49,824 bases of DNA from Klebsormidium nitens (taxonomy: Eukaryota > Plantae > Klebsormidiophyceae), in the NCBI GenBank assembly GCA_000708835.1, contig DF237575.1, positions 1-49,824 of the forward strand, in the 5' to 3' direction. The position numbers and the translations under genes were made by a program. A model generated the notes under the pieces. It did no database searches. It was not told the origin of the DNA and worked only from the letters and a program-made list of their open reading frames with translations. Below, piece by piece: positions 800-43,700 of the stretch (position 1 is its first letter; the number at the start of each line of letters is the position of its first letter).

Positions 800-923
800 T
801 ACCGCTTCAAAATGACCCTTCCCTAAGATGTTTTCACACTTTTTTCGAGCCTGAGACACTAACAAAAGGAGTCTACTTCGTCGTACTTGCTTCATTGCAT
901 TGTCGCCACTTTCAGCTATCGGG

Positions 924-1819: not shown

Positions 1820-4800
1820 TTAGTAAGAAACCTTAGCAGAGGGCGAGGACGGAGCGTCCGAATCGCTCTCACTGCTTTCTTCGTCCTTGATGGGGGACCC
1901 GGTTCTCGACTCTGATATCAAGATCATTTTGCTGCTATCCATTTCCACCCCTGGTAATTCTCCTCTTTTTGCATCACCAGTTTGTGAACGCGTTTCCGTC
2001 AAAGATTCCGCTGCCTTGTCGGATCTCGATTCCGTTGCGGATTCCGCTGCCAAGCCGATCTCCACCAGGTCCGGCGCCGACTTGACGGAAAGCAGGCCGC
2101 AGCCCTTCCGCTTTCCGCTATGAGATGACCGCTTGGAGCGCCGCAAAACGGACCCCTTTCCGGCGGAACGAATCACCGGACCGTCAGACAACACCGGACA
2201 GCCGCTGCCGTCCGGTTCACTGTCCGGTGACACCCGGCCTTTTCTCAAACTAGAGGCGGACGTTTCTTGCTTGCTGCTCTGCGCGAGCTTGGCCTGACTT
2301 ACAACCCACCTGAAAGTAACGACGGAGATAAACGTCTTGAGAAGTGGATTGAAAGAACATGGATCAAAAAGCGCGTCAGAACCTTCGATCAGCAGAAATT
2401 TGCGGACCTGAACAATCTTTTCTTATCCCCTGCTCCTCGGGTCTGTTGGCAAAAGAACGGAGCAAGTAACGCAATAAGCTTCTTCGAATGAACATACAAA
2501 CACATCCTTTCAAGGTTCTTGGAAGGTACGTACATTCCGTCGTGTTTGACAAACGCGATTCCGGCTACGATTCATCTCCTAGTCTTATCCACGTGTCCTT
2601 TGGGCACGAACACTTGAAAGGAAGAGAATAGGGCGTGGAAGAGGTCCTCTTTTGGCAACCCGATAAGTGAGTTCAATAATGGCGCCAATAACTAGGTTGA
2701 GGGCGGCTCACTTGTCCCACAGTTTTGACGCGCAGGAGGCGTGCAAATCCAACGCGGTGCAGCACTGGACGGACGACAGATGGACACGCGTCAGAGAGCT
2801 GGCCAAGACTCCTCGGAAGCCTAGCCAGGGGCGTGCGGTTTCATCGGGCCTCACTCGTATGCGGTGCGCCTAACTACAGAATGGGCACCAGTAATCCACA
2901 TTTCGCGACTATGATAAGTCGGCTCTGAAAACCTAAACTCAAGTTTTGGACGTCAAAACGATTTGCTTTTACCTCTAGACCTTTCAAGCGGTGGATCTTA
3001 GCCAAGCGACTAAATGCTCACAGACCAGGCGCGTCGAGTTACCGGACTCGAACCGCTTCCGTTCCGTCGAATCATCAGCGGATTATCGCATTGCGCTGTT
3101 CTGAGCTGGCGAAGCGTCTCTTTTCAACGGAGCAAATGCCACGTGTGAGCTCACCTCTTCCCACGGTCGACTTGACACCTTGAGAAGGAGGTACCGCCAG
3201 CATATCTGATTCTGCGAGTGCGCGTCATGCTCTACCTGCGCAGATGACGTCATGCTCTTGTCATGGGCGGCGGGAACTTGAGATGAAGTCAACTTTTAGC
3301 AAAACGTGCTTGCACCTTCGCGAAGGGGGACAAAAAGGAGAATGAAGAAACGCCAGGAGAGAACTTTACAGGCACGCGTTTGTGTTCACGTCTGTGCGAC
3401 ATTCTGCAAGGCTGTGCTTCTCCTTTTATGAGGTGTGCGCTGAGTGCGTTTAGACGGGAGCGAGGCGCGCGCGTCTTCAGATGTCTGTCTGACAGTACAA
3501 CGTGTAAACCGACCGGGTAAATCGGAGGGGAGGCTCACCGGCAAGCCGACCCGTATCTTGAGCACGGTGTGCCACCACCGCTCGTACGACTGCTTGAAGT
3601 CTGTGACAATGGCGGCCAAACTGCACGGGATTTTGTGTTGCTTCACATGTCTCGAATCACTGGAACGGTTCCAAAGGAAAGTGGTGTCCTAAGCGGTGGC
3701 GTGTAGAGCACAAGGACGAGGCCAAAAAGCAGAAGTGGGAGGAATGACGACGTCAGAGCAGATTTCGAAGAGCCATTTCTATTTGCTCGTAGGAGAAAGA
3801 CGAGAAAAATGGTGAGAGCTCCCGAACGCAAGCTCGAACAGCAAAGCGGATTTCGAGTGAGGCGTTTGTCATGAGTAGGCGGAAAAAGGAAAGGAGACGG
3901 GTTCTCAGATGAGGATTGGATGTCCAAAACGATGGCATCAAACAAGCTGAACCGCCAGCATACCATGTTTGTAATCAGAACATTTTTTATTATTTTCGAG
4001 CGACGACACAAAAAGTTATCCCCGGCGAGGGCCACCGAGGGAGCCACCTACAGGCTGCAACGGGATCCCCGTCAGAAAAAAGGTAGCGTCAGATCCGGAT
4101 TGTCAAAGCTGACGTGAGCAGCCACGAAATTGGACTCTGATGCTGACGTCAGCAGCTGAGAGACTTCGATGCTTATTTTCCTGACGTAACCGCCACAAAC
4201 GCCCACCTGTTAAAGACGAGGTCCTTGAACATGAGCTCCTTCCGCCGGCTGATGCCCAGGGCGCCGTACCGGCCTCCGTTCCGCACTACGAGAACGATGT
4301 GGCGGAACTCCTGAACGGAGCGGCCATGAAGAACAAAGCTGTTCAGCAGAAAGGCGGAAGCGCGAAGAGACCTCTTTGACACTGACCAAGATTGGATGCG
4401 GCCGGGGAAAAACGAAGGCACGAAAGAGGTTTGCGAGTCTTATCGTTTCGGCGTTCAAGAAGCTTTATCATAGCAAAGAGCAACGAAGTGGTCAGGCTTT
4501 ATGTCTCTCAGCTGATTGGACCGAAAGGATATGAAGAGCTACAAAGCCGAGGCGAGGCTTGAGCTTCGATTGAAGTCGTGAAGATAGGACTCCACAGAAA
4601 GCGTGTGATGACCCGGTCAGGAAGAAGCTCTCACCTGGCCATCAACTGCCGTCTTGAAGCCAAGCGGAATCCGATCGATGTCCAAGCCCGACTGCAAGCA
4701 AGAAATAGACCCATTTGGCAAGGCAAAAGTATGGTGAAATCCTTGGACAGATACGCTTTCAACGATCAGTCCTTCACATCCTCAACTGGTGCAAACTCAG

Positions 4801-6156
4801 TGGAAAGGAGTTTTTCTGGCCGTCTCATCGGCACCCTTACATTTGACTCGTCAAAAGTTTCACCTGATTGGTTGGATAGTCAAGAAGGACTTTGCTGAGC
4901 GTCGACTTACCGTCAAAAGAAGTGCCAGAAAGACGGCCTCTACGCACTTGATTGGCAGAGCATCGCGTATGATCTGTGAGGAAACGGCAGCTGATCAGAC
5001 AAAAGCTACCTTTTTCTTCACCTTTTCCATCAAGCTTTGGCATGACTGGGCAGAGCAATAAGGCTAGCAGCCAACGAGCCATTTGCAGACCAGTTTGCCA
5101 ATTCTACAGATTTGATTGGAAACCCCAGAACATCTCCAAAACTCCTGGCATTCAGGGCGAGGGAGTCAGGCAATCTGGCAGCCTTCCCAGAACTCAAGCT
5201 TGTGAACTTTGACACCGGCTTCTAAGATGATGTAGAGAGCGCGTGAACTGAAGAAGAAGAACAAGGCACCAGTGCTCAGTATTGTCATCCTGAAGCGACT
5301 GACAGAAGTGTCGACTTCTGGGGCATGTCGAACGTTTAACACAGGGAAGAGCGCCCCTACCTGCCGCCCGGTGTCAACAATGCGCTTCAGAGGCCGCTTC
5401 TTGCGAACGTTGAAGTAGGTCTCTGGGGTGTAGTTGTACTCGAACGAGCTTATGAACTGCAGACAGACGGTTTCGAGTACTGAAGAAAAGACTATCAAAC
5501 GGGTTATTCAATAAAAGCATCTCGGATTACCCCAGAAGCCGAGTGCGTTGCTTCATTCGTGATGAATCTGTGGTCGCCTTCCCCTGTCGAGGTCGACTAA
5601 CCCCAATGGTCAACGGCATAACGGCATTCCCTTCCAATCTGTACCAAGTGGCTTCCACAGAAAGCGTTCTGAAGTTGATGAACACCACTAACCCAGCAGC
5701 ATTCAGCTGCCTAACAAGTCTCACACGGGTCCAGATCACGATCAGCAGGCGCTTCTGTTCTGCGGATACACCTGTTAGCAAGCTACTGGAGTCAGCAGCC
5801 CTGTTACAGCATTGCATTGCACACACTCGTTGGGACAGTCCGAACGGTGGTGCAGATCAGTTTGTTTCAGCAAACACCACCCCAAAAAACGTTCCAAATT
5901 TCAAGGGTGCCCCTTCCTTTCTTGAGCATGCTGCACAAACGGCGCGATCACCTGTAAAGGCCCTATTACACCTAATGGGCAAAAGCAGGGACTGCAAGTT
6001 TTCTTTGCATACAGCTGACCCCACCTGCTGAATTGCTCTGAGTCGCTGCCGCAGCGGCAGCTTAGCAAGTCCCTCAGGCAGTACCGGACGTGGTGGCGCC
6101 GGACCCACTCCGGACGGCTCTGATTCGGATGGCTCTGATTTGATCGAGCAGCCCAT
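1820..6156 (-). CDS. VASH: Vasohibin-family tubulin carboxypeptidase (detyrosinase), ~385 aa, 9 exons
   Basis: Phase-consistent GT-AG exons: 6025-6156, 5361-5456, 4911-4973, 4635-4691, 4207-4310, 3539-3620, 3155-3235, 2712-2764, 1820-2309. The translation contains FEYNYTPETYFNVRKKRPL, DALPIKCVEAVFLALLLT, DRIPLGFKT, FRHIVLVVRNGGRYGALGISRRKELMFK and FKQSYERWWHTVLKIRVGLPV. These match the VASH1/2 motifs LQYNHTG..FEIKKSRP, LPIKCLEAV, FRHIV..GRYGALGMSRR and YGRCWHVLKKVKLG. The start Met at 6156 is uncertain. Confidence 0.9.
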
Positions 6157-9136
6157 TGGCGAAGAGAGTGCGAGACTCGATGATTTTGAGATGTGGCAGG
6201 GGGTGAGTCCTAGCAGGAAGTCACTGGTGTGCTACGGTAGGGACTCAAATTTGAGCATGAGTATGAGTCGCCTTGACGAGGCACCATTCATGCACCATCT
6301 GCTTTGCTCGTTGCTGCGCAAACTCGTTGGAGGACCTATATCACCTAAAGTGCAGCGCACATACGCCTCTACTCAGTAGATCAGTAGCATACAAGTCTCG
6401 AATCAGACTAACAGCGGGATCTGCCCCTTCATCACAAATGCGGAGAGATCCGATGATCGACCAGCTTTGAGAACACAGCATTGGGAAGCCGCCTTCAAGG
6501 GCCACTACAAAATTGCTTCGCGCCTTTCTATGCGCTTCAAGTTCAAAGCTCTCAGAGTCAGAGTCAGAGGTCTCCGGCTGGAGTGGACCCCAAATTGACG
6601 TGATGTCAACGATCTACGATCATCTACGGTCTCAAATCCATTCGGTCTGGCTATGGACGGACGGACGGCCGGATTGACTACATGTATGACTGCGCGCGCA
6701 ATCGCAAGGGTAAACCTGCTGTGGATTGAAGGTTGCAAAGGCAGTCTCTCGAATTTTGCTGTCAGTGTTTAGGACGTACATGCCAAAGTACGCTACCTAT
6801 TGATTGCAGGTAGGTATTGAAAAGACTCATGAACAGTACACCCAATTTGGGACCTGCATGTGAGAATCTGGAGAGGCGGCTTCCTATTGGCCAGCTTCAC
6901 CGCCGATGTTTGCATCCACGCGCAGCTTGGATTGGGGTAGGTAGAGCCTTCACCAATACCTAGTTCTTATTTCCTCTCTTCTTATTTCTCCTTAAACTTT
7001 GAAGCTTCAACCGTCAGGTACTAGGTACCTGAATTCGTTGCTATCCATAGGAGTCAGGGACCTCACTAGCAGGACCTTCGTAATCTTGAGTTTGAATAAG
7101 CGTACAGGTAGGCAACTGTTATGACCTCATTTAGCACCTCCCTCGGCTGCATCAGCCATCCGCAATCAAAGCGCAAGCTAATCAAAGTGGTCTGCTACTA
7201 GCTAATCAAAATTAACATGCTTGGGCAGGTGCCTCCTTTTCTTGTCTACCAAGGAGGCCGTCTGATTGACCTGAGCTGTCACCACCTGTTGCTGATGACG
7301 GGAGCTGCAATGTGTTTCAAGTTCGTCGCAGACCTTCGATTGATGGAAAATAGTGGTGCAGCAATAGGCAGCTGGAAAGCCCTTCTGGCTGGCTCTAGGC
7401 GTTATTGAGCTGGCTGCAAAAGAAGGGTTTTTCTTAATCCAGCTCCTTGCGCCACATTGTCAATAAGCGCACGCAAAGATGGAGTACCAGAGGTGCACCA
7501 GAGGAGGGGCGTTCAGCAACTTTGTAAGTGTGCTCACCTTCCCTCCGTTCTTCAAGTCAGCAAAGTCCAGTTTAGATACTAGAAAGCCTTGTGATTTTTG
7601 CTCTATAGCGTCACATTGCAGGGGTGTGCAGGTAGGTGCCGACACTAGCTGTTTATCAAAGGGTTTCAGAAGAATTCTTTCAACTTTAGCTTTTCTGTCC
7701 TGCGCAAATGGTTGACAAAATGTAGTGGTATAAGCAACCACGATTTGGATTAACAACCAATCAAGCAGCACCAGCTGCCAAGAGAAATGATTCTGCATCA
7801 GGGCACCTGTATCAGCGAAAAGCAGCAGCAAGAGGGGTGAGGAAAGAAAGAAACCCTTCATTGGATCATTCAAACTTACTACTTAGAAGGCATCTGTAAA
7901 GATCCTAGTGGCCCGCGTGGCAGCCTTGGTAAGACGAGAGAGACGAGAGAGAAAACACTGCCATAAAAACTCAAGGAGGCTGAGGTCTTTCTGATTTGAG
8001 AGCATGAAGGGAAGGGTTTGTCATAAGAACGACGTAAGTTAGGGGCACTGCCCCCATTACATGAGAGCCTGAGTACCCGCAGATCAATGTGTGTGCAGAA
8101 CAATTCGGATCCTTTTTTCTAGGATTTTACGTACCTCAAATAGACACTTCCTCTTTGATGCCAGGGTCAAAGCCAAGCCGAAGGGACTTTGCACTAGGGA
8201 CTTTGGAAGGAGTCTGCGCTGGTTGCGCAGTTTTCCAGATGTTTGCGGATCGAAAATCCTCTCGGAACCTTTTCCGCCAAAGCCAGCCCCGAGTCCTGCG
8301 GGGCATCCATTCTTCCTCAATCCAATCAAACCACGTCCTGGACATGTGACCATCAAAATATCAGGGTAGCTTACAGGGCAAGCCCTCATGTGAATTGAAC
8401 AGGGGGTCCTTCCTGAGTCGACCCTTTTCAATGGCTTGCCAACCAAAGTAATCCGTCTAAGGAGAGCTCTTCGCAACCAACTTCGCGGTACCAAACCCGA
8501 AGAGCACCAACTGCAAGCAGGCATCACATATTGGCTCTTTAATAGCCCCCTCTGGCATGCGTTGCAGCGGTCTGTGATGCTCATACGCTATAGTTTGGGT
8601 TGCTTATTAGCCCTGAGATTCCAGGAGAAAGATACAAGGCTCGCCAACCAAGTCCTCGAATCTAAAGCTTACGATGCGTTCATGTGCAAACCCCCAGACT
8701 AAGGCCTCCAGTGCTCAAATGCTTCTCGTAGCCTTGTTCGACCGTTAAGCGAGACGAGACTTGCCAATCCGCTCTCCTCCGGCTCAGCGCCACCTGAATT
8801 GCTCATAACATTGCTCGTCTTGCACGCTAACATCAACGATTTTATTTTTCGTGCTGCCCCGTCTCACATAAGGTGTTAGAGGGTTTTTATAAAGAAGCTC
8901 TGTAAATTATCATCACGTCAGCTTTCACCAAACGTCGCTCTCAGGTGCACTTTGCAGGGCACACCGCTTTCAGGGAACAATCAGCAACAGGTTCTACTCG
9001 CATTGGCGTCAGCAAGAGTAGATGCGTCTTGAGTTGGCGACTGCAAACGAGCGCCCTTCTCCCTTTCGAGATAGTGGCTGAGGGGCGTGCTCGTCATCCG
9101 TGACGTTTTCCTGACGTCACTCTTCCATCTTCGCAG

Positions 9137-15100: not shown

Positions 15101-18100
15101 TTTGTGGACGCTGCCATATGTCAGCTTGCCCGATATGCTATTGTGTCTCCTTACAGCTTACCGGTGATCTGAGTCCGGCCAACCTCACCAATCGAGCGAG
15201 CGCGCTCGCGCACAAGACGTGGAGCCTCGAGCTCCAGGCCGCGCAGGTCGACGCGGCCGCGCCCGCGCTCGCGCAGCTGAACACGTCAGCACTGCAGCTG
15301 CAGAGAGTGCTGCGAAGCGTTGCAGGTGATTGAGACTCCTTGAAGTTGGCGAACCCTCTCGTGCACGTTCACAGTCGTGTCGCTAGCTAACTAAGTCACC
15401 GGCTTCCATTTTTGTAAAAGCAATCGATCAAAGAATATCCACCTGTGCCTGCGGGAATTTCAGTGCTTGGAGACCAGTGAGCTTTTTGTATCAATTATCA
15501 CAACGGAAACGACTGTGGTTGTAATACATTTTGCATAATCGTCGAAGAAGAAAAGAGTCTCGGGCTCCCCGAACATTTCATTCAAGGGACCAACATTGAT
15601 TGCCTCATTCCTTTCAGCCTTGATCCGGGCAAAGCTAAGGCACTGTGAGTTCTCAACCGGCCTTCGTACATTAACACGGCTACTTGACTTACCCTTTCCG
15701 TTCCTATCTTTCGAACCAGACTCCCTTTCTTAACCCTCTCCATTATCCTTCTCTAGATGCCAAGGCCCCGCTGCTTACGGCGCTGGGCATTGCCCTCTCC
15801 CCCTCAGCCACCGACAGCGCAACCCTCCTCAAAACGGGGCCTCAGCTCATTCCGGCCATCACCGCGTTCCGGTCAGCGGCCGGAACCGCGTTGGCCGGCA
15901 CTCTACCGAATATCGCGGCTCTTTCTGCGGGGCTTAGCCCACTCCCGGGTTTGGAAGAACACGTGCGAGACCTGCAGGGTTATCAAGCAAACATCGAGGT
16001 GTTTGCTAAACCCGCACTCAGCGATCTGGTGAGGATCGAGCGTTTTAAGGTCTTCTCTAGCCATAGGCAGCGAAAACTTTCCTGCAGGTTGAAAAGTGAC
16101 GCCTACTGAGATTTCTTGCGTGATCCTTCGCAGAAAGCTGGCTATCTGCCGGCAACCTTTGAATCTTTGGACCTTGTTGGACAGGGCTTGTCAGTCTTGC
16201 GACCATCGGGATTTGAAGAATATAATTTTGATTTCTTCGAGGACTCAAAATCACTGACACCAAAAATCAGCCGGCTGCGAGCCTCGCTTCAGACCTGCAG
16301 AGAGGTCCTGCACTATGAGAGGAAAGCTTTCAGTTCTTCACCACTTCTTCGAGGATGACAAATATCGAGACCGGCCGCCTGAGCAAGAAATCGGCTGACC
16401 CTCATTTCCTCTCTTGTGAGCCGCAGCTTGTCGGCCTGGCGGGCGCGCTCCAAGCCCTGCCAAACCTCGCTGACGTCAGCGCGTTGTGGGGCCAGCTGTC
16501 GTTCCAGGCGCCCGCCGCGCCGCTGAACCTGACGTCAGCAATCGCGGCCGCGCGCCGCGTGGGCGCGCAGCGCCTCATGAGCGCCGAAAACTTCACGACC
16601 GTGTACCAGTACCTGGACAGGGTGCGTCAGCGTGACGTCACAAGCACTCAACACATTTTTAAGATGGAGCCAAGAGGCCATGTGATTGACAGGAAAGCAA
16701 GGTTTCGAGAGGAAAGGGTGTTATAAAGCCCGATCGAAACAGCGGCAAACTCGTCGAGGGAAACTAGATAAAGTCCACTCGTTCCTATTTTTGACGACGG
16801 CGTCGGGGGATCGGTCCCCCTGACGTCAAACGGCGACTGTATTGTTTGCCCCTCTGCACTTGCGTCGCCGACAGGCTCAAGTAAGTTAGCGGTGACAGTC
16901 TCCGAGCCCAGGTCTCGAAACGGGTTCTGACGTTTTGGGCCAACCCGGTCATACGCCCTCTTTAGTGCCAACTCGCGGAGCCTGGCCGGAGTCACGCATA
17001 GCTCTGCTTAAATAAAACGCTTCAACTCTTTCCGCAGGCGGACGATCTTCTCTACGGCTCCGGTGACGTTATCCTGACGCAGCTCGAGCCGGCGTCCGTG
17101 CACGCCTCCCTGACCGCGAACGGAACGGGAGCCGCCGCGACCGGAATCCTGGACGCCTTCAACCGGGTCTACAACCTCGCAACTGGGGACAATTCCTCGA
17201 CCGGTGATCCGTTCGATTCCGCTGCGATACGAACCGGTCTGAAGATCGTCGGCCGGATTGGTGCCGGTCCAAACGCGTCCCGCGATTCCGCGGCGTATCT
17301 GGCGAGAGTGGCGGACGTTGCGAATGGAACGGCGGAAGTAGAACGGAACGGTAAGCGCGACTATGCGCAGAAAGCCATTGATGTCAGATAAAATTTTCAG
17401 ACGCCTCTTCCGAAACAGCTCCCTCATCACATTTTTCTGCCATAGACCTCTCGATAAACTTATGTTGGGGTGTGATTTGTGCAGCAAGATGTCAGTTACA
17501 GAGGATCTTGAAAAGTGGTAACTTACAAAGCCCTTACTGAAACCACAAATTCAGACGCTAAGACAGCAAACAAGCGAGCCCTCAGGTGCACCCGTTTCGT
17601 TGGGCCACACGTACAGATCCGTTTCCGCTGCGTTACAGGTTCCGCCGGAAGGTACTTCACGTTCCATGGCGCGTCCTGCCTGACGGACGACTGCCTGTCC
17701 AATTCCATCGACCTCCTGTTTAAGGGATCCCTCTCGCAAGCGGCTGACGTCATCTTCGGTGAGCCCGCTGTGACTCGACAGAAGCTGAACCCTCCAAGAT
17801 CTCCGAAGCGCTTTGGCTAGTAGGTGGAAGCTGCTCTTCGCAGCGCATGAAGAGCGGCTGTTATAGAAGAGCGACCGACGGGGAAAGCCTCATAAAAGCG
17901 AAACTATTACAGCTCTGCATGTGAGCAGATCAGCTTTGTACGCAGTTGCAGCCCTTTATGAAAACAAAGTCTGATCTGGAGGACGGTCACGTTGGTCTCA
18001 TTTCTTACTCTCCTGGACTTTTGATTCGCAATGGAGCATCAACAGCTTTCCAACAAAATGACCATTCTTCTGGGTGATCTATATCTGTGACAAGAAGCTC

Positions 18101-21100
18101 TGATTATGCCGACCTTTGCTACTTGAAAGAGCCATCTGCTTCTGCTTCATGCAGAATGTGCAGAACAAATACCAGTAACTAATTCCTCCTGGACGCTGCC
18201 CGGTTGCAGGTACCGGGGCACTATCGGCCTGGCAGCTCTCCATCCAGGGTACCTTGGTCATAGCGTATGTCGTCCCCGCGTCCGCGGCCGCGCTTGCCGC
18301 GCTGAGCATCGTCTTCGCGAGGCCGTGGCTGGCCATTACCGTCGCCGCTACGGTGACGGTTATCAGTCCGTTTGCGTTGCTTATCAGCGGAGCGCTCGAA
18401 GCGCCAATCGGTGAGACTCCTAACACCGGTCAACCATTCATTTGCATCTACTAGTTCATGGAGCGGGACTGTTGTAATCGATCTCGCTGAGCTTTCGAGC
18501 AATGAAAACAGGACTCAGAAAGATCCGGTATAAGGCTTCCTGCTTCTGCCAGTGATTTCGCACTCACCCAACTGCAAGTGAGATAAGAAGATGACAAGCT
18601 ACGTGGTGCTTGTATAATGAGAATAACGCTCTGATGCCTCACCTCTTAGGCGAGTCGTCTCCTATCCGTTGGTCAACTCAGATGTAACCGCTTGCTTTGT
18701 CCTTCGTTAAGATGAGGTTTGCGTCCGACGCATTGTCAGCAGCTTATGCGGACGTCCGGATGTGGTGTAGGTCTTTTGGCTGCGGACGCTTGCGGCTCGT
18801 TCGCCAGCCTGACGGTCAAGCTGCTCGACACGACAGCCGCCGACTACCACGTGAGCTTTGCCGCTCGATCTGAACCTCTTCTGACGCTCACTGACCGAGA
18901 GATGCGAAGAAATACTGGAAATTATCACCAGGTATCGAGAGCCTCGACTCAGCTACTATTCGCGCTCGGAAGACCTTCCTTCTGCTGAGGTCTCGAGTCA
19001 AAGTGTTCTCCATATTGTTGTCGAAGTCCGCGTCGAGTTTTCGGCCACACGGCGGATAGCTCAAAATGTCAATGACTCACGTCTGAGCGAACGAATGCGA
19101 ATTGATGTCAAAGACGTCAAAGGGCAACCAAAGAGATCTAGGGTTTCAATATGAGCATCAAAACCAGTCGAGAGATGGTGAGTAATGCTGCGTTCAGAAG
19201 CAAAGCGAACCAAATGAATGTTGTCTCTCCTAAAGCTGCGCGTTTGAAGTTGAGTTCTCCGTGCTTCCAGATGGCCCTCTCGAACCAGTCCGTTGTAATA
19301 AACCCCGGCGCGGTTGCGGCCGCGGTCTTAGGCGGGGAGTGCGCAGCGGCGAACGACGTCACGGCCATGTGGCACAACGTCAGCAGGGCGGTCGTGCCGT
19401 ACTTTCCGACACTAACGGCGTCATGGCTGGGGTCACCTGACGTTACACAGGGCTTCCAGGCGGGGCAGAAACTGGACGTGAGTGACGTCAAATAGGTGCT
19501 GCAAAGAATAAGAAACTTTTAATGCCAGCCCTACATTTCTTACAAATGCATTTGATCGATTGAACGGTTTCCGCTGCGTCCGCAGATGCATGTCCTAGGG
19601 CGCAACTCCGCACCCCCCAGTCCAGATGCGAACAATCTTGCGCTGTTTGATGTACGGGTTTCGGCAACCTTCGGCTTGAATCTACTCGCAAACTTCCTCT
19701 TAAGTCCCTGGAATGCACCAAATTAAACTAAGCGTGCACCTATGATAATTGCAGGCGATTGTACGGAACGGCTCCGCGGAGCTGGGCGCTCTCCTCAAGC
19801 AACTCGTCCAGAGCGGCGAGAGCACGGCCAGCTGCCAACGGGTAAGTCACGCCACTCTAGTTTCTCCTATGTGTCACTGATTCATTCCGTGAAATAAATT
19901 GCTTGCGAGCGTCCGTTGCTCCCAAAGAGGACTGCCCGTATGTGCGTGTTTTCTGCTCTTTGTCGTCAAGGCCTAAAAGTTGAGGCACTAGAGATGGCGT
20001 TGAGTTCAGTGCTTCCTTAGATCAGTACTTAAGCTCAGTTCACCGTCCACGGCCCAGGGCTGCTGCAAGTGAGGGTCCTTCTCCAGGTCTCAGACCCGTT
20101 GCTTTCAGTCGCTTATCCTTCGCAAGTCGAATTCTTCCAGACGCTGAATGCTCTTCGCGAGATTCATCGACAACGTGCGCAACAACTCGCAAGCCATTCA
20201 ATGACTATTTTCGCTGCGGGTCAGGACCAGTCATTGCAGGCTTGCTCGCGCGCATATGGTAACCAGTTGCAAGGCCCCGTAAACCACCTGCCCCCTTTTA
20301 CGCTGCAGATACACGAGGCGTACCTCGACATCCACGGGGCCTTCTGCTGCGACTTCGTGAACTCAGTGCAGTGGTACTTCGGAAGCTGGTACATCATTTC
20401 GCTTCTTATGCTCTTCGTGGGCACCCCCGCTTCTCTCTTAGCCGCCCGGTACTGCCCCCGGTGGAAACCGGCCCCGGGAAACCCGGAAGAGGTGCCTGCC
20501 GCCACAGGCTTGGCCGGCGGAAGCCAAGACGATCCCGCTCCAGTCAGAGCGCCGAGTTCGTTGGCAGAGCTTACCCAAGAAGAGGAAGCGGATCGCTTAT
20601 CCGAAGGACCGGTTTTGGAAGGGTCACCCAGTCCCGAAATACGAGAGTCTTCCAACGCGAGCGGGATGCGGTGGGAGAAGCTGGGAGGTGACGTCAGGCC
20701 CCGGGAAAAGCGGGCGGTTGGGTACGTGCCTTGGAGCGCCACGTGGGCGTCGGCCAAGGCTCGGGACCCCCTGGCCGGGCCGTCTCGCTCTAGTTCGCTC
20801 GATCCGAACAGCGAAGCATCAACGGCTGTGAGACAAGCGGGTGCCGTCTTACACCAGAGCCAGGGGCCTGATATGAAGGCCCCGTTAGTGGCGAATCAGA
20901 GCAAACCAAGTACGTTGCCTGAAAACGGATCGAACGAGCAGTGCAGGCAATCAACGGAAACGAATGAGGAGGGTTCCGGCGGAAAGCGGAAGCTGCTCCG
21001 CGGTTCGGCAGGTTCTTCGCGGAACCAGCTCTGGGGCGCCCTTGCGAGGGCGGGCTCTTGGAGGCAGGGTGGAAAGGGGCGGTCAGACCCTTCGGCTTGA
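9137..21100 (+). CDS. Large 5-TM membrane glycoprotein of the Tweety/prominin-like superfamily, ~1,380 aa modelled, 5' exon(s) not resolved
   Basis: About 20 GC-rich exons: 9137-9346, 9962-10233, 10626-10797, 11150-11297, 11678-11769, 12142-12354, 12628-12761, 13345-13548, ~13990-14153, 14740-14838, 15157-15325, 15757-16028, 16427-16621, 17038-17350, 17639-17758, 18210-18410, 18771-18850, 19271-19477, 19755-19841, 20309-21100. All junctions are phase-consistent except 13548->~13990. Hydrophobic helices: IYSYIGLALALLSTLVLFATLVWLCL; ILLGFYALATVCFIFVGVF; TLVIAYVVPASAAALAALSIVF; WLAITVAATVTVISPFALLISGAL; WYIISLLMLFVGTPASLLA. There are many N-x-S/T sites, a DAC motif after TM4, and SCQRIHEAYLDIHGAFCCDFV before TM5, resembling the Tweety C..LH..Y......C.D motif. 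The gene model is more secure than the family call. Confidence 0.7.
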
Positions 21101-30675: not shown

Positions 30676-33600
30676 TCACAACCTGCTCACAATGTTGACG
30701 AAAAAGGACAATCTTCGCACCATAGTTGACGGGTCTCTCGCCGAGCGTTCTGTCAGTTAGTGCCAATACTGAATCAATTTGAGTTCAACGGACACATTGC
30801 TGACGCTGTTAAGAACATGATAAAGTCCCAAAAAACCATGCGGTCCTCTTCCGACGAAAATCCAGTTTGGTACATCCACACAACGGTGGATGTCCCAATG
30901 TCATATATGGTTCCTCCCGGGCCTTGCAATAATGTGCTCGGACGCCTTTCACTCAACCAACCCTTGGACGTCCGAAACCCTTCATGTACGGAACTGAACG
31001 GTGAGTTGTTGCAAGGCAATCCAGGATGTTGAGATGCGTAATGCTTGGCGGGCTCACCAGGGGCGGCGTTACCGGCGGGCTTCCCGGCTTCCCTCTGGAG
31101 CAGCGTATTGAACAGGCTGCTGAAAATCATGGCGATCACGGTTGACGTCAGCGTGACGACATTGTACGGCATACTGAAGTCGGGAGTCGCGAGCGGGATG
31201 AGCAGGCCGCTCGTGTACACGCGAACAGGGAGGTCCGCCTGCGCACAAAGGAAATGGAAACGGAATGAGCGTGTGGGGCGGACCGTGAGCGGGGAGCTCC
31301 ACGTACGGGCCATAGTAAACGGTAGCACACAAGCTCGTTTGGCAAGCCGCCCAGGCATGGGGAGGTCCGCCGGTACAATCGAACGGAATCCGCCCGGCGG
31401 ACAATCGGACGGAAAGGGAATGAACTTCCGAAACCATACGGGAGGTTCCGCATCCGGTGGAAATCCAAAATTGGAGCGGAAAAGAGTCCACGAATGGGAT
31501 TCGCACGGCCCCCACGCGCCGGAAGCGAAATTCCAAAACGGAATGGACGGAAGGAAAAGCGGAGCAGCTTTTCGGCCTGGAGCACAAATTGGGCAGCATA
31601 GGGGATCACTCGCCTGCATTCTGGCTAGCAGCGGCCGGCCCTCCAGCCCCCGAGAATCCCCACCGGTCGAATCGCCGTCAGACATCCGATAGGCCACCCC
31701 CCCAGAAACGGACGGAAACGTGACAATGGCGGACGGGAGGTCAAATCCCCGGTCGCCATCTGGGGGATGCTCCTCGATCCGCAGGTAGCCCTGCATCCAG
31801 AGAATTTCAGAGTTTGGGCCTTACCGGTTAAGTTACTGGGTTTATTGGGTTTGTTGGGTTGGCACCTCCAACCAGAAGCTCTGTGGTAAACTCCTGAAAG
31901 CACACCGTCTTCTTTCGCATTCTACCCCGAATCTGAAAACGGAGCGATGAATGACTGGCCCAGCGAGTTATCCTAAATGTTTGAGGACTGCACCATAAGA
32001 TCTAACCATGTCGCCGAGAGATTTCGAACCTGGTCGATCCAGAATCCCGTCATGAGCAGTTCTTGGAAACGGGAAAGGACCCAGCGCCACGAATGTAAAG
32101 GGAGAGCCCCAGCACAGCCTGTTTAGAAGCAGGCAATAGCTTTTGAGGCTAACCTGAGCAAAATGTCAGCAAACAATCAGAAAGGCAGTAATGCTGAGTC
32201 CGCTTCAACAGTTCAGCGACGATCCGATCGCCATCATCTTACTTACGATTGCCATCATCTTACTTTCGAAACGCAACCAGAAAATAAAAAGCATGAAGTG
32301 CATCTCCTTAAGATGAGACATGTCTTTCGTGCAAAACCGACTGTTATACCTGCAGACAACTCGACTAGAAAACGAAACGCAGAAGCTTTGACCACTTGAC
32401 TTTGAACTACAGAGAAAACGGACCGGGATCCGAACACGTGGACGAGCTGGGTAAAGTGAAGATGATAAGGCATCTCACCTTGTCGAACTCCATCGACAGC
32501 ACCACCCGTTTCACGTCAGCAGGTATTCGCAGCTCCAGTTCCATCACTGCCTGCCGCTCCCGATCCTTTGCCGGCACCAGGCTCGCCCTCTCCGTCCAAT
32601 CAGAGAGCGCCACGTGGCGTCCATCCATCTCCAGCCTTAGCGTATGGAAGTAAACCCGGATGAACCACGGTAAAAGCTGGAAATAACGGACCACCGTTTT
32701 TCCCTCCCCCCCCGCAAGCCTGGTCAACTCTAAGCGAATGCCCCCCCGTTCCAGTCCGTGCCCCGTCACAAACCGTGATACCTCGAACGGCGCTCGTTCG
32801 GCCGCTGGTTGATTTGCCCCGTCGTAGGGAAGCGAAACGTTCAAGGGCTGCCCCAGAGTGGCCCGTTTCAAGTCGTATTCAAGCAGGGTTTTCGACCTGC
32901 CCTCCGCCGACCAAACCCACTTTGGCTGCGGGTTCACCGACGCTCCGCTAAACCCCTCTCCAAAGTAGTCGACTCGCCGGCCTTCTGTGTAGATCCGGCT
33001 GACGTCAGCCAAGGGACAGCTCCCAGTCAACTCCCTCCCAAACACGTCAGCCAGAGAAACCGCCTGCTTGCTCGCCATATGCCCCACACCCCCAGCAGGG
33101 TTCTCGTTTGGGATGCCCACCCCCTCTCCAACGTCCAGCACGAGCGTCAGCGTCTGCTCCAGCACAATTCCTCCGCGAGCTCTGGCGCTGACATCATCCC
33201 CCCTTCCGCCGACGTCACCCGACGAAGCTCCTTCACATCCTCTGTCGCCGCTCCACTCTCGGCCCGCTCCGGTCGCGGGTTCCAGACAGCTTCCGGACGC
33301 TGACGCCGTCCTGACGTCAGCAGCCGGTGCGCCCCCCGCCCATATGTGCACTTGGAGCGCGTGGTAGCTGCCCCCGTACACTCTGCGGCGCTCCAGAAGC
33401 GTCGCCAGCCCCGCTTTATCTCGGCACGGCAGAAGCTTCAGCCAGGGCGTCAAATTCTCGGTGCAGACTGCCTCGCGAGGAAGCGCTCCGTATCTCGTGT
33501 GCCCCAACCGGATGCCCTCTTTGTTCCCCGCCCCAAGCGAACAGGTTTCCAAGGTTCTTCCAGCAGCCGTCCCCCCACACTCGTTCTCAGCATCGCCTTT

Positions 33601-35912: not shown

Positions 35913-36046
35913 ATATGTCATGCCTCAGCCTATGCTTGAATATGTAATAACACAGAACAGAGAATGAAAGAATAAAAGCGTTTTTTCCGCCCCATCTCAT
36001 CCGCCTGCCAGCTTATTCGCAGAGGGTGGAGCCTAAGAGTGCAGCC

Positions 36047-36396: not shown

Positions 36397-37758
36397 ATCT
36401 TGTTTGGTGTGAGTTTGAAGCAGATTAAAGCGGGGAACGTTGACATAGCAACCTGGCTTATAATCAAGTGAATAAAAATATGGTGCAAAAGATTTTCAGA
36501 CTGACGAGATCCAAGATACGCACAACGGAAAGATCAAGTCAAATGAGACCCAGTCCTTAGGTCATTTGTTGAAGGAGCAAGACTATTTTCATGGGCTTTG
36601 GATAATTTGATTCGAGAGTGGTTTATACTGGTCGTTGGTCATATGGCTCAATAATAACGGCTTGGAGAGGCAGTGATTCGTACAGATTTGGCCGTGGTGC
36701 AGTGTCTAACAATCATATTGAAAAAGTTACTTGATACGTGCACGAGATCAGTCTGATTGTCCTGTTTATATAATCAGGTCAAACAGAGCGAGATTTCAAA
36801 CGTCGGGCCTCTTTAGCTCCTGCCTTTAGGGCAACCATGGCATTTCCCCCTTCTCGAAGTGCCACGTCTTGGCAACCAGGCTCTTCATGTGAATTCTATA
36901 CTGTATTCTAAATGCGACTGAAGTCTCTGCTTATGAAGGCTCAGGATCTGCACATATGCGGGCCGGCGGCCGCGACCATCAGCTGCCATTGCGCGATCGG
37001 CTCTGCTTGGCGGCCCGCGAGGGAACGTGCATGCAAGCAGACCCGGCACGCTCTACAAGGTGCCTTCAGCTGTCGCGTGCCCAGAACCGAGTCAGTGAAA
37101 GTTGCTAGTTGCAGCGGGCTCGTACTTGTCTGAGAATCATCAACAGTTGCACCAGAAAGACAGATGCGATGCTAAAACCTGCATTCCCGATTGTTTTCGT
37201 CGACGATGGGCATAACTCCATTGTACTTCTCGGACTATATCATGCATGACAGCAAACATTAGGCTTTTTGATGTGAGCTGCGTACGTTGCATATGGGCTA
37301 CCATGTAGGCCGTAGAAGCCGCGCAGATTGAATGTGCACACACCGCAACAGTAAACTTTAGTCGGGACTGCATCATTGCAGTTGCCTTCAGATGATCAGC
37401 TTGACCCTCTAGCTCGACGTAGCACGAAGAGCCGCAATGCGAAGCAATAACGCTGGTGCCGACTGTACAGTTTTTTTTTCAATGATTGTGGTCCCGCTTG
37501 ATTGGGCAGATTGGACACAGGCTTAGCTCAGAATCGTATGCTCGCGGTACGTATTGATGAGTCATGGAAGCATATTGAAACAAGTGCATCTCCGTACACT
37601 GCGTTTGTATACAGCTAGTATGCTTGAATCAGTACTGTTGAGAATCATCCGCAGAGTGACCAACGGGCATCTGCTTTGCCTGAATCCTAGCAGTATAGGA
37701 AACCCGCCACGGCTGGGATCGACAAGGAGGTCTTGAAAGCTCGCGGTCAATCTGCAAG

Positions 37759-40700
37759 TTACAAGATTTGTTGAAGCCAAGGGTTGGCTGCCGCGTCCTG
37801 CTCTAACGACTTTTTTAGGTCCTCCGCAGCTTTCACTGCCTCGTCGGGGCTCATCTGATCAATCGGCAACGCGGCAAAGTCCCGCAGAAAGGCGCGCACG
37901 CGGGCGGCTCCCCGTGCGGTGTCGTCCGGCCCGGACACCCGTTTCCGTTTTGCGCCGACCTGCCGGCAAGAACAAGGCAAATCAACCACGGCTGACAAAA
38001 GCATGCCGTTCCTTGCAGAACGACACTGTTGGCGATGTATCAGCTCTCGGTTGACCACACTGTCCGAAGCTTACTGAACGGGATCCACTTTTGGTCCGCA
38101 CAGGACTGACGTGGACTCAACCGCATCGATCCGTCCGTTCGCGCACGAGGCCATGACCTGGGGTCTCAAAGCCGTTGCTTTCTTCCTCTCAGACTCGATG
38201 AAGAATATCGAGCATTCCTTTAGTAGGCTCCACGCAGTACGAAGGTTGCGCAAAGGAGCCTTTTCAAACCACACGACTCACCTCCCCGTCTGCCTGCTGG
38301 TCGGCAGGTGTGAAGTCTTCGAGCTCCTCCGCCTTTTTCCGCGCGAGCGCCACCACGTTCTCGGGAAAGTGCGCAAACTCGGCCACGTAAATACCAAAGC
38401 TCTGGTCGCACGGGCCTTCCTCAACCTGTAACACAGCAAACCGTGCTCAGCATTCAAGGTGGGCGTCGCGGTTTGCGAGACGTCAGCCGCTATCTCCGAC
38501 GGCGCAAATAGTCAACAGCAACAAAGACTTTCGAAACACGAGCTACAGAAATACGAGACAACGATGAACGTCCGAGTCGCGGGAAGACCTCTTGAAGTGG
38601 GCGTCGCTTTGCATGGAACAATCCAATCGCACGGTGTCCAAATTCCAGGCCGACAATTTCACCGTCGTAAATTTCGACCTGAGGAAGACAGGCTCCGAAA
38701 TGCGCACCTAGCGGACGTCTTCTTCCTCTGTCAACCCCTTCTCGGAAGACTGGGTCGCCGATACTAGATCAACTAGTAACGAGCAGAAATCCTAAAAGGT
38801 CCTCTGATCATGTCCAAAGGACAGGTCAACACTCCACATGGCCTTGACACCTTTTCTCAGCCTAGGAACCAGCCCTCACCTTGTACAGCATCGTGAGTTT
38901 CCGCGTCTCCTCGTCGATGTGCGCGCTGACGTGGTAGTTGGCCACCCCGACCGGGGGACCCCTGGGGGGCCCGTGCACCGGGGCTTGCCCGGCGGTGCTG
39001 GCGAGGGCGGTCAGCTCGTGGAAGTGGGTCGCGAACAGAGTCGGCGCGCGCGTGACTTCGGTCAGGTACTCGCAGATGGCCCAGGCAAGACCTGCAATCA
39101 GAAGAAGAGGTCAGCGAGTAGAACTAACGTTCGCACAAGAACGGATGGGCAAAGCTCTTGACTTTGCTTCAGGTACCTTGAAAGTTTGAAGTTTAGGACC
39201 ACGTTTGGACCACGTTTGAGTGATGAATTTGTAAGGGCTTCAGATATGGATCCCGATTGATTGATGCGGGTGACTTCGCTCGAGTAATCTCAGCTGGCCC
39301 GCGTGCAGCAAGTGAATGTTGCAAAAGGTCCCAAACCGAAGTTTGGGCGTTTTTCTTATTACAGTGCGAGGGTCAACGTGAAACGGCGCGTAAGGAGCAT
39401 ACTGAGCACGCGCGCAAGGTTGATCGGGGACTGGCAGATACCGACGATACTCAACGGGCACAAAGACCAAAAAAACAACATGGCTGACGTCAGCAGTTTG
39501 TGTCAGTGTCTTTGATCGTAGACCGGTTTGCAACGACAGGTTGACCGCCAACGCCGTCAGCTGTCTGCTCACCGAAGCCGTCGTAGGTGGACGTCCCCCG
39601 CCCTAGTTCGTCGATGATGATGAGCGAGTTCTGGGTGGCCGCCTTCAGGATCGCGCTCGTCTCCAGCATCTCCGCCATGAACGTCGACACGCCGCGCAGC
39701 TGACGAAGTACAAGAAGCGGACGGTCAGGAACCAGCGCTTACAGGACTAGAAGGATCGTTTTCGCACCCTCTCATCATGCCCGCTGAGCGTCTGCCCTTT
39801 TCAATTCCAATTGGGCTCTGGTTTCAAACCATTTTCGTCCAAGGGTTGCGGCATTGACGAGGTCCTTGAATCGTTATGAGAGGCAGTTTTGACGTTGTTT
39901 CTAACACTTTCGTACAAATTCCGACACGCGGCCCCTTGACACAACGGTACAAGCGGATATGCAGGACGGAAGGTGATGTGAGCGCAACTTGAAGAAGACC
40001 AGTGCGGAGGTTGCTTCCGAAGCATCTGAATAAGGGGCCGCCTTAAGAGAAGTAACACTTGTGGGATGCTACTTTGTTGCAAAGTAACCGCTGCTGAGTG
40101 TTTGTGACAAGCTGGGACCCGATATTCTGGACACTCGGCACGATAAGGCAGATCGGAAAAGAACGCGAAGTTGCTCGGGTCAATAGAAAAACCCTCAAGG
40201 TCAATGCAAGAATCGGAAAAGAACGCGAAGTTGCTCGGGTCAATAGAAAAACCCTCAAGGTCAATGCAAGAAACAAAGCAACATGGAGACGCCTTCTATG
40301 CGGAAATAAAGCGAGTCCCAAAACCATTCAAAGTCATTGCGTCTGCTCCTTCCAGCTCACCTGGCAGTCGCCCGCCCCGACGCGCGCGAAGATGCAGTCG
40401 CGCACGCTGATGTCAGCGGAGTCGCAGGGCACGAAGCAGCCGACCTGGGCCATGAGCACGTTCACACCGACCTGCCGGATGAAGGTCGACTTGCCGCCCA
40501 TGTTGGGGCCGGTGATCAGCTGGAACCAGCTCTTGCCGCGCACCTGGGTCAGAGTCTCAGAATGTTAGGTTTAAGAGAAAGGCTTTAGCACTTATGATCG
40601 CGATTAGGAATTAAGATGTTGGATATCGAATTGAGGGTTTCGATGTCGCAAGATTGAACTCGATTGTCCCCATCAAAAAGCAGGCTTCGAACGCGGAACG

Positions 40701-43700
40701 GACTTGGTCAACTCAAGCAGGATTGGATTCTTGACCCGCACCTTGTCAAAATGCTGGCGTTTCTTAGATAGTGATGTCTCTTTGTCAAATTGGAAAAGAA
40801 TCCCAGATGCAGATTCGACTCAATTGGAGAAGACGTGTCATGTTCCAACGGACAGCTCATATTCCCCAAGTGGACAAGTTGCAGCAAAAGCTTTCATGCA
40901 TAAGTGCAGTCTGACCATTCCACACGGCCACAGTAGAGCTGCTCTTACATGTAGCCACTGTAAGAGTCGAGTTTGGTTCGACAAGCAAGGAACTGGAAAA
41001 GAGAATCACAGAAACTGGAGCAGAGAATTACAGTTCTCAGCGAAGTGCGCAAGTTCAAACTTGGGTTACCTTTCTTGGCACAAGGTCAACGAGTCGGCCC
41101 TATTAACAAGTGAAAATAGAAGACCAATCGGTACACACAGTTTGCTTCATAATGGAGGAGCAAGTGCACCAGCTGACGATCGTTCGTAACGACGCTGACG
41201 TCATCCCCTTTCCACTTCTGTAGAACAAGTGGATTCTCCAGTTCGTTTGTTTAGATAAGGTCTCACGGAACTTTTGAGAAGTTGAACATCACACCCGCGC
41301 CGTCTTCAAAGCTCAGTGAGGAAGTCTCACGGAACTGCAAGAAATTAAAACTGACCAGCTTGCAGTCATTGGCGATGAAGCTGACGTCATCCTGGACCTC
41401 GACGCAGGGGTGACGGCTGCCGCGCAGCACGATGTCGCCCTCGTCGCATGACGTCATGGTCGGACGCACGTACGGCAGGGGCGCGTTCACGGACAGGTCC
41501 GCGAAGCTGAGCAACACGTCCAGCTGGCTCACAATTGCGGCTACGGACTCAAAGATCTGGAAAAGAGCAGAAACGACGGTGATGTTTTTCACAATCAAGG
41601 TTGCGGGGTTTAAGATTTTTAGTCGTCTTTCTTGACTTGGTAGCAAACTCGGAGTCGCAACATCCGCGAAGCTGAGCAGCACATCTAATCCGCTCACAAT
41701 GACGGCCACCGACTCGAAAATCTGAGAGTGGAAAGACGAAGCACAGGGCTTGTCGCTTTCTTTCGTCTGAGCTCCCCTTCTATATTGTTCAAGCCAGAGT
41801 GTATCTTTCTTGGCATTTATCAATGAAAGAAAGCGAAAAACAGAAAGCTTTGCGGACACGAGCAGCGCCCACGTTGGCGGCTACGGACTCAACGATCTAG
41901 AAAATGGGAGGCACGGTGGCTTATGTGCTTATTTTCAGTTCGGTTTTTCCCGTTTTTATCAACTGCATCTGACGAGGAGTCTGCAGAGTTTGTCAAAGAG
42001 GGCACTTCGAGGTCTGAAGCAGAGTCCAGCTACAATGAGGAACTCTTCTCGATCGATAAAGAGGGGGCCCCTCAAAGGTTATCATGATTTAAAGAAGTTG
42101 CGAGGAGCTGGTAGAAATTGCTCCAGAATGTAAAAGAGTGATATACTCCCCCTTCGAAGCAAACAAGCCCTCGCCGGAGCGAAGGTCCGACCCATTCCGA
42201 CGGTCCGGTTCAAAGCCGCCGACAAGAGTACCTAACCCCGATACAGTCAAAGCGAAACCTCAAAAAGGCGCCCCCACAAATGACGCCGCAATATTGACGA
42301 CCGTCTTGACCAGCATCATTACCTTGTTGCTGTTATTACCCTCCATAACCGCATACCAAAACCCCAAAATGTCACCTCCACAAGCAACGCTTCCGACCAG
42401 CACCTTCCGCGTGGTGTTGTAAACTAAGCCTTGTACCAAGACCCAGAAAACTTACTCCACAAACGACGCCGCGATGTTGACCACCGTTCCGACCAGCTCC
42501 TTTGCGTGGTGACTCTTCACAACTCTCGTACCAGAACCCAGAAAACTTACCTCCACAAACGACGCCGCGATGTTGACGACCGTCCTGACCAGCTCCTTCT
42601 GCGTGGTCTTATGTTTGACTCTCCTTAACCCTCGTACCGAAACCCAAAATCTTACCTCCACAAACGACGCCGCGATGTTGACCACCGTCCCGACCAGCTC
42701 CTTTTGCGTGGTGTTGTAGTCCTCCGTCAGCTTGACGTACGTGTCGCTCAGCCGCTTGAGCTTGCTGGTCGAGAACTTGACGCCGTCCTTGCGCGTCTCC
42801 ACCATGTGGTACGGCGTCGTCGTGATCTTCTTGCGGTACTTGGGCTCCTCCTTCTTCGTCAGCCGGAACACGTGCCCGTGCTGCGGTTTTAAATGTTGCA
42901 GGTTAGGGTTTTGCGATTTAGGATCAAGCCTTTTAAGGTCTCGAGGTCTCAGGTTGCAAGATTCTGAAGTGTCGAAGTGTTACCACTGAGTAGAATGGAG
43001 ATTAGGAGGATCCTCTCGTGGGACTTGGGCTCCTCCTTCTAGGTCAGCCGTGCCGGTGCCGTGCGAAAACACAAGGTCAGACTTTGGTGCGTTGCATGGG
43101 TCTGGCCTCAGTGTGTCTTGTGTCTTTTCAAGTGCCTTTTACGTCTTGGTCAGCAGAAGTACTTACTCGCGCTGAGGTGCGAAGTTCCGGCTTCCTGTTT
43201 TGACAGTTCCAAAGTTCAGAATTCAATGGATGGCTTACTTGCTTCTGCTCGGCTTCCGCTGCTTGCGCTGTTCTATCTCAGCCAGGCCCAAAAGTAGGCC
43301 CCACGTCAGAAGGGGCGAAGGCATAAGCGTTCATGATTTTGACTATGGCCTTCGCCGTCACTCACTTCTCCCCCTCAAGAGAACCTGCGGCTTTACAAGT
43401 GCCGCTAGCGCTTTTGCTTTAAGTGTCTCCGTCTCGAATTCGCTCTTGTCCTCGACGTATACCTTTGCTGCGCTTTCCACTCGTACTGGGAAAATTATCC
43501 TACAACAAAACTCTGCGTACTCAAAAAAGCGGAACCACAATCAGAACCAGAAAGATACAGAAGCACAAATGGCCAGATCTCAGCGACGGATTCCGTCCAA
43601 CCCACCTGCGGATTTCGGTCCAACTTGAGCACCTTCTCCACGTCCTGCCCCTTGAGCCCCAGATACCGCGCCGCCTCCGCATACACGTCCCGGATCTGCG

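Follow-up and report, generated by a model that had tools for sequence, protein, structure and literature searches.

The stretch of DNA analysed here, called the window throughout, is the whole scaffold DF237575.1 (GCA_000708835.1; 49,824 nt) of Klebsormidium nitens, a streptophyte green alga, and shows exactly 17 copies of the octameric palindrome TGACGTCA between positions 3245 and 41456, together with four copies of its 12-mer form GCTGACGTCAGC. The annotated genes of the window are: a gene encoding a 1406-amino-acid (aa) protein without Pfam domains, on the + strand and ending at 21100; LCM, on the + strand at 25731-29083; PIG-T, on the - strand at 30456-35057; and MSH2, on the - strand from 37759 to beyond 45057. 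For the 1406-aa gene, exons between 15800 and 21300 were taken from RNA-derived contigs of another study, which show GT..AG introns and 0 differences, and the six PIG-T exons were located by tblastn of the PIG-T protein against the window; the large PIG-T exon is 100% identical to the 718-aa phosphatidylinositol glycan class T of Klebsormidium nitens. The ten larger open reading frames (ORFs) of the left 15 kb gave no match in a Pfam search, and the region 1-9000, which has weak coding potential, holds two TGACGTCA sites.

Nine sites lie in coding exons (16471, 16530, 17745, 20689, 31143, 33000, 33312, 41382 and 41449), five are intronic (16633, 16821, 19483, 39485 and 41196), one (9112) belongs to a triple cluster at the probable 5' end of the 1406-aa gene, and two (3245 and 4144) are in non-coding DNA to which no gene was assigned. 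Thus 14 sites are within annotated or RNA-supported gene ranges, and the fifteenth (9112) is just 5' of the first predicted coding segment of the 1406-aa gene. Three relatives were compared with the window: two more distant ones, represented by syntenic contigs of the JGI samples 3300060284 and 3300060285 (first and second relative), and a closer one, represented by the Logan contig L003. The sites and the half-site features that accompany them are as follows; a strand is given where one applies.

3245..3252: TGACGTCA in non-coding DNA; no credible ORF crosses the site.
4142..4153: perfect 12-mer GCTGACGTCAGC (exact match) in non-coding DNA, also without a credible ORF across it.
9089..9119: triple cluster CGTCA-(12)-TGACG-(11)-TGACGTCA, upstream of the first predicted coding segment (9131-9379) of the 1406-aa gene, whose 5' end it probably marks.
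16469..16480: perfect 12-mer in a coding exon of the 1406-aa gene (16426-16620, RNA-derived contigs), read GCT GAC GTC AGC = A-D-V-S.
16530..16537: site in the other open frame of the same exon, cTG ACG TCA = L-T-S (RNA-derived contigs).
16622..16640: site in an intron, 13 nt past the 5' splice site and preceded at 11 bp by a CGTCA half-site (GTGCGTCAGCGTGACGTCA; RNA-derived contigs); contigs of a relative, organism B, align through site 16633 and break at 16642/16645.
16821..16828: site in the middle of intron 16621-17036 (RNA-derived contigs).
17064..17079, + strand: TGACG-N6-TGACG half-site tandem in a coding exon, without a full site (half-site pair scan).
17745..17752: exonic site about 6 nt before a 5' splice site, gcT GAC GTC Atc = A-D-V-I (RNA-derived contigs).
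19483..19490: intronic site abutting a 5' splice site (GTGAG|TGACGTCA; RNA-derived contigs); an organism B contig aligns as far as 19490 and diverges beyond.
20689..20696: site in the final exon of the 1406-aa gene, G-D-V-R (RNA-derived contigs).
31143..31161: site in PIG-T exon 5, CTG ACG TCA = L-T-S (with the rare Ser codon TCA), and a TGACG half-site 11 bp off.
32998..33009: perfect 12-mer in PIG-T exon 3, P-L-A-D-V-S-R, kept in the closer relative L003 and absent in the two distant ones.
33190..33320: variable Gly/Ser-rich insert of PIG-T, with a full site at 33312, a CGTCA half-site 11 bp off and one-mismatch copies TGACGTCG and TGATGTCA.
39483..39494: MSH2 intron, with a perfect 12-mer about 81 nt past the 5' splice site at the end of the ...YDGFG exon.
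41196..41203: site in an MSH2 intron, about 128 nt from the intron start as judged from the probable splice site.
41382..41389: MSH2 exon site, GAT GAC GTC AGC = D-D-V-S (Q-D-D-V-S-F).
41449..41456: MSH2 exon site, ATG ACG TCA = M-T-S (P-T-M-T-S-C), in K. nitens only; the relatives have ATG ACC CCC.

An earlier sequence-only reading of the window had counted at least 17 octamers and four 12-mers; the exact numbers are 17 and four. The octamer is the most frequent of all 8-mers of the window and its top 8-mer palindrome, and the 17 copies compare with 0.75 ± 0.9 in 100 dinucleotide shuffles (maximum 4), whereas the four 12-mers compare with 0.00. Markov models of order 3 and 4 expect 1.9 and 2.7 copies, respectively; models of order 5-6 are largely fitted, on 50 kb, by the motif's own sub-words. 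The hexamer GACGTC is present 34 times and both the flanking T and A are found in 17 of these, so the octamer and not the hexamer is the unit. The one-mismatch neighbours are not depleted (35 observed, 28.5 expected) and the most enriched among them is the CpG-deamination product TGATGTCA/TGACATCA, with 6 copies against 2.15 expected. Hybrid C/G-box forms are mildly enriched: TGACGTG with 14 against 6.8 expected and CCACGTCA with 5 against 1.5. The spacing of the sites is clustered, six of the 16 gaps being of 320 bp or less (P = 0.004). The CpG observed/expected ratio is 0.94 in the window; no special CpG neighbourhood was detected at the sites, which show 1.09 against 1.08 at GC-matched random positions.

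The simplest account would be that the excess is an ordinary by-product of codon usage, amino-acid repeats, composition, a single repeat family or an assembly or adapter artefact. GAC, GTC, AGC, ACG and CTG are indeed common codons here, and the PIG-T insert is of low complexity. However, in the coding set (9.3 kb of in-frame segments that are RNA-supported, homology-supported or stop-free from a codon model, kept separate and never joined) the nine sites compare with 0.55 ± 0.73 expected when synonymous codons are permuted among identical amino acids, and none of 5000 such shuffles reaches nine. The excess thus survives a codon-aware as well as a dinucleotide-aware background. The introns of the three site-bearing genes hold five sites against 0.55 expected, about 9-fold. 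The 40-bp flanks of the 17 sites are mutually unrelated: their pairwise identity reaches 40% at most and that of random positions 39%, which rules out a dispersed repeat or miniature inverted-repeat transposable element family as the source. A transposon excision footprint was rejected on logic, since a duplication, an end, a reverse-complemented end and a duplication cannot yield TGACGTCA; at conserved codons such as QDDVSF, moreover, the site-bearing sequence differs only at synonymous positions, which also counts against a footprint. The exonic sites are present with 0 differences in RNA-derived contigs from other studies, and sites at orthologous positions are found in the independent assemblies of the relatives, so the sites are not an assembly artefact. 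Together with the rare codons, the out-of-frame tandems and the control loci described below, these results exclude composition, codon usage, repeats and artefact as the cause of the excess, and the probability left to a by-product is practically negligible.

In the coding exons, six of the nine sites are read as D-V and three as T-S, the remaining frame containing a TGA stop, and the frames that the sequence-only reading had named for 16471, 16530, 41382, 41449 and 33000 (A-D-V-S, L-T-S, D-D-V-S, M-T-S and P-L-A-D-V-S-R) were all right. Six of the 14 x-D-V-x contexts able to hold xxT GAC GTC Axx are filled, against 0.41 expected, as are three of the five [L/M/V]-T-S contexts, against 0.15 expected. 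The word is completed with the help of rare codons: GCT, which accounts for 13% of the Ala codons, TCA, for 8% of the Ser codons, and GAT, for 28% of the Asp codons. The imprint extends to the protein, because the coding segments contain 29 D-V dipeptides against 12.3 expected, a 2.4-fold over-representation; for PIG-T, K. nitens shows an observed/expected ratio of D-V of 2.8 and its relatives show 1.6-4.2, compared with 1.24 in 91 other orthologues. The pressure for the word overrides codon choice and even amino-acid choice.

The excess is not restricted to the window. The contigs of the two distant relatives show four TGACGTCA each in 31 kb and L003 shows three in 3.9 kb, whereas an order-3 model expects about 0.3-0.4 per locus, so the enrichment is approximately 7-11-fold. 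A further 8.8 kb from the first relative contains no additional site, and the density in this relative is about 1 per 10 kb, lower than the 3.4 per 10 kb in K. nitens. The negative control was a set of 79 loci with PIG-T from unrelated, distant eukaryotes (816 kb), retrieved by homology search with a PIG-T alignment; these contain 8 sites against 11.3 expected, so that among the loci compared the over-representation is confined to K. nitens and its relatives. The MSH2 orthologues of the relatives were reached by walking their contigs. At 4-fold degenerate positions K. nitens is 48-51% identical to the two distant relatives and 68% to L003, but the sites at 31143 (PIG-T exon 5, L-T-S) and 41382 (MSH2, D-D-V-S) are identical at 16 of 16 nt in K. 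nitens and both distant relatives. Sites 33000 and 33312 are common to K. nitens and L003 only. In this small sample, two of five K. nitens exonic sites are retained in the distant relatives and two more in L003 (P ~0.02). The sequence-only reading had described the PIG-T insert as full of intact and decayed versions, and the segment does contain one full site, one half-site and two one-mismatch copies. A site pair, intact or decayed, is found in the insert of all four lineages while the surrounding amino acids differ, with a spacing of 21 bp, or of 12 bp after a 9-bp deletion; in K. nitens the pair is decayed to TGATGTCA, by a CpG-to-TpG change, and TGACGTCG, and in the relatives both members are intact. 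The comparison of the insert and of the orthologous sites indicates retention against a saturated background, plus turnover in weakly constrained protein segments.

The sequence around the sites is also symmetric. At -2 the flanks favour G and at -1 they favour C (20 and 19 of 34 symmetrised positions, respectively), giving GC...GC, and when they are oriented by transcript, C is found at -1 in nine sites and G at +1 in eight, with the GC dinucleotide six times on each side. Direct TGACG pairs show a peak at a start-to-start distance of 11 bp (TGACG-N6-TGACG), with five pairs against 0.27 expected (position-jitter P = 5e-5; family-wise 0.003 over offsets 6-40). A full site takes part in four of the five pairs. 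Three of the five are in coding exons; since 11 bp is not a multiple of three and is out of frame, these three do not stem from peptide repeats. With respect to transcription, two tandems run sense and three antisense. One pair persists in L003, where its spacer differs by three changes, and no TGACG pair at 11 bp was found in the 816 kb of control loci. The relatives show half-site pairs at 11, 12 and 21 bp. The dyad-symmetric flanks and the tandems, which resemble the plant as-1 element, point to a dimeric reader of the bZIP type.

The same observations bear on a role of the word in RNA, by which UGACGUCA in the pre-mRNA would act as a splicing or processing enhancer, or self-complementary copies would pair. 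In its favour, 14 sites are within gene ranges and 9112 is just upstream of the first predicted coding segment of the 1406-aa gene; 16633, 17745 and 19483 are within 13 nt of a 5' splice site, and the close pairs 16471/16530 and 41382/41449 could form stems of 8-11 bp. However, the flank preference is dyad-symmetric in transcript orientation and the oriented tandems are strand-neutral, a partner within 900 nt is lacking for most sites, the distance to the splice site is 81-201 nt for the remaining three intronic sites, and one cluster is located at or before a probable gene start. Proximity to 5' splice sites, considered as a feature in its own right, was dropped as post hoc: two intronic sites are at +6 and +13 and an exonic one at -6, but the other three are at about +81, +128 and +201. 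Given the dyad symmetry and the strand-neutral tandems, an RNA-level role is very unlikely.

Our tentative reading, to which we give slightly less than even credence, is that TGACGTCA is a DNA word under selection that a dimeric protein of the bZIP type reads within gene bodies. GC-TGACGTCA-GC would be the preferred extended form, acting on double-stranded DNA, and selection would keep the word at high density within the transcription units of Klebsormidium nitens and its relatives. A putative bZIP-type dimer, for which the TGA bZIPs are candidates, would bind in gene bodies both the single palindromes and the TGACG-N6-TGACG tandems, whose half-sites are one helical turn apart, and the binding may serve a gene-body function (a mark related to chromatin or methylation, or intragenic regulation) and not classical promoter control. 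TGA bZIPs are reported in Klebsormidium (PMC6508501). The sequence-only reading had held that these are not ordinary transcription factor sites; this stands in so far as at most one cluster (9092-9119) is at a probable gene start, but not as regards the kind of reader, because the flank symmetry and the as-1-like tandems favour one of the bZIP type.

Several points weigh against a bZIP-type reader. The full word is enriched about 9-fold and its one-mismatch neighbours only about 1.2-fold, a very sharp specificity that looks more like the recognition word of an enzyme than like a typical degenerate transcription factor motif. Nine of 19 permissive coding contexts, about half, carry the word, a degree of filling that suggests a pressure on density across the whole genome more than the regulation of particular genes. 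Most sites are mid-gene and not promoter-proximal, only the cluster 9092-9119 being near a probable gene start. The tandems have a spacing of 11 bp, and the plant as-1 element has one of 12 bp. Methylation of the central CG generally impairs bZIP binding. The gene bodies of K. nitens are CG-methylated (PMC5890265), which places the central CpG of most sites in methylated territory. The tandem and conservation statistics are those of one 50-kb window and few orthologous exons. As weak evidence, the 14 kb of intergenic and LCM-gene DNA contain no site; exclusion from intergenic DNA was discarded as not significant, since about 0.2 sites are expected there at background and about 2 at the genic enrichment.

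A different mechanism, akin to highly iterated palindrome 1 (HIP1) of cyanobacteria and preferred by the sequence-only reading, is a drive in which an enzyme that modifies or repairs DNA at (T)GACGTC(A), such as a methyltransferase or a mismatch or nick repair enzyme, would turn near-cognate sequence into the word or would protect existing copies, with a preference for chromatin that is methylated, transcribed and rich in exons; the excess would then be mutational and not the result of selection for binding. This would suit the sharpness of the octamer, whose neighbours are near expectation, and the filling of about half of the permissive coding contexts. Plant gene-body methylation is exon-biased, and the density of the sites follows the order exon > intron > intergenic, a gradient that matches such methylation; one clear CpG-to-TpG decay is seen in K. 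nitens at a site kept in the three relatives. The word has a central CpG and CG gene-body methylation occurs in the species (PMC5890265), and cyanobacterial HIP1, which behaves alike, is tied to methyltransferases (PMC4390886). The sequence-only reading had also offered a chromatin or methylation anchor, a possibility to which the published gene-body methylation is relevant. On the other side, the neighbours are not depleted, and the enrichment of the deamination product is the opposite of what a repair of the very-short-patch type predicts. The density is lowest where DNA is least constrained, unconstrained DNA being below coding DNA; the sites persist at synonymous positions over a near-saturated divergence; the CpG ratio around the sites equals the GC-matched background; and the 11-bp tandem geometry is left unexplained. 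Moreover, we know of no enzyme in eukaryotes that is specific for an 8-bp palindrome. A mutational or repair-driven origin, as preferred by the sequence-only reading, is thus not supported by the neighbour counts, the enriched deamination product, the low density in unconstrained DNA and the synonymous persistence, and we regard such a drive as unlikely, although it is the main rival. The probability that remains belongs to readers or mechanisms that we have not thought of.

The behaviour like that of HIP1 (GCGATCGC) that had been proposed for the word is seen in its rank as top 8-mer, its presence in exons and introns, its override of codon choice and the retention of some copies in the relatives. 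Both are octameric palindromes among the commonest words (here by the window count), are found in coding and non-coding DNA and bend codon choice; HIP1 is conserved at orthologous positions beyond the neutral expectation, and the Klebsormidium word may be as well, judged from the small sample given above. The differences are the eukaryotic host, the word itself, the density of about 1 per 3 kb in the window, with sites that appear to follow genes, and the coincidence of the Klebsormidium word with a classical transcription factor site. For the Klebsormidium word we know of no cognate site-specific methyltransferase, the methylation known in the species being of the generic CG gene-body kind (PMC5890265). 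That classical site is the plant C-box or animal cyclic AMP response element (CRE), bound by bZIP dimers, which has the identical core TGACGTCA; here, the candidate sites show dyad-symmetric flanks and homotypic clusters. Known C-box/CRE sites are promoter or enhancer elements at ordinary frequency, whereas those of the window are mostly mid-gene, approximately 10-16-fold over-represented and fill about half of the permissive codon contexts. The tandems may be comparable to as-1, in which direct TGACG motifs are likewise about one helical turn apart; there, two TGA bZIP dimers bind two motifs at a distance of 12 bp (as cited in PMC6508501), and the distance here is 11 bp. A third parallel is the M26/CRE meiotic recombination hotspot of fission yeast (ATGACGT), which is bound by the Atf1-Pcr1 bZIP dimer and acts in coding sequence through chromatin and not through promoter activity. 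It shares with the Klebsormidium word, known here from its sequence, the location of a CRE-type motif inside coding sequence, but hotspot motifs are expected to erode by conversion and not to accumulate, and the flanks here are GC and not A/T. Sexual reproduction is, to our knowledge, not established for Klebsormidium.

A more speculative extension, which we consider doubtful, is that the word is a eukaryotic counterpart of HIP1: GC-TGACGTCA-GC would be a gene-body "identity" or chromatin word, read by a bZIP-type and possibly methylation-aware protein and favoured wherever the protein code permits, which would reshape codon use and dipeptide content genome-wide and mark transcription units (for gene-body methylation, protection from silencing or co-transcriptional control) rather than switch single genes. 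The CpG observed/expected ratio is 1.08 in the 1406-aa gene, 1.03 in MSH2, 0.90 in PIG-T and 0.74 in the site-free LCM, a sample too small to interpret; the difference between LCM and the site-rich genes may reflect different methylation histories, with the same limit of sample.

Searches of the full-text literature returned nothing relevant on TGACGTCA or ACGTCA with Klebsormidium, on TGACGTCA in algae, on highly iterated palindromes in eukaryotes or on chromatin-accessibility motifs of K. nitens, in agreement with the earlier statement that no description in algae was known. The word is a real DNA-level signal and apparently undescribed in the searchable literature. The elements new here are the context saturation, the D-V imprint with its orthologue controls, the 816-kb control, the neighbour spectrum, the symmetry tests, the 11-bp tandem and the link to gene-body methylation. 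[quoted passage not shown] If a bZIP protein is the reader, transcription factor sites would have a genome-wide gene-body role beyond promoters, and if a modification or repair activity drives the word, no HIP1-like system would have been found in a eukaryote before it; the matter bears on how gene-body marks are targeted in the plant lineage. The question is directly testable, since a methylome (MethylC-seq, GSE104474) and RNA-seq data are available for K. nitens and its bZIP family is small, and in these algae the word is a confounder for analyses of codon usage, dN/dS and motif discovery.

Other repeats and rearrangements were observed in the window. A possible partner motif, TGTCCAAG/GGACA, is not part of the feature: TGTCCAAG is found once per strand, at 4679 and 4742, at least 527 bp from the nearest site, and forms there, within 1-9000, an inverted pair TGTCCAAG/CTTGGACA. 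A second palindrome, GCGGCCGC, is over-represented, with 7 copies against 1.7 expected; four of them are within the 10-mer CGCGGCCGCG (15252, 16543, 18283 and 35677) and the others are at 19316, 35637 and 36966, and copies are found in exons of the 1406-aa gene, as Ala-Ala-Ala codons, and in the PIG-T/MSH2 intergenic region. In K. nitens, MSH2 and PIG-T are in tandem on the - strand, 2.7 kb apart (35058-47200, compared with contigs L005/L006), whereas in both relatives represented by these contigs the two genes are divergent and separated by ORFs that are TXD17-like and ASTER-like, which implies an inversion or rearrangement. The MSH2 introns carry copies of exon ends and splice sites, which fits a separate note on an "exon-end echo": on the - strand (41260-41330) a second "ttccgtgagacc" is found about 65 nt past the probable 5' splice site GTGAGA at 41330, and a repeat at 42429-42713, of 2.9 copies of a 105-bp unit, includes CTTACCTC, the reverse complement of an exon|GTAAG junction. 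A perfect tandem duplication of 60 bp is found at 40152-40272. In the 1406-aa gene, the intronic segment 16923-16964 (42 bp) matches, with 7 differences, other contigs from the RNA-derived runs and from organism B, the flanks of which are unrelated to the window, and is probably a small dispersed repeat.

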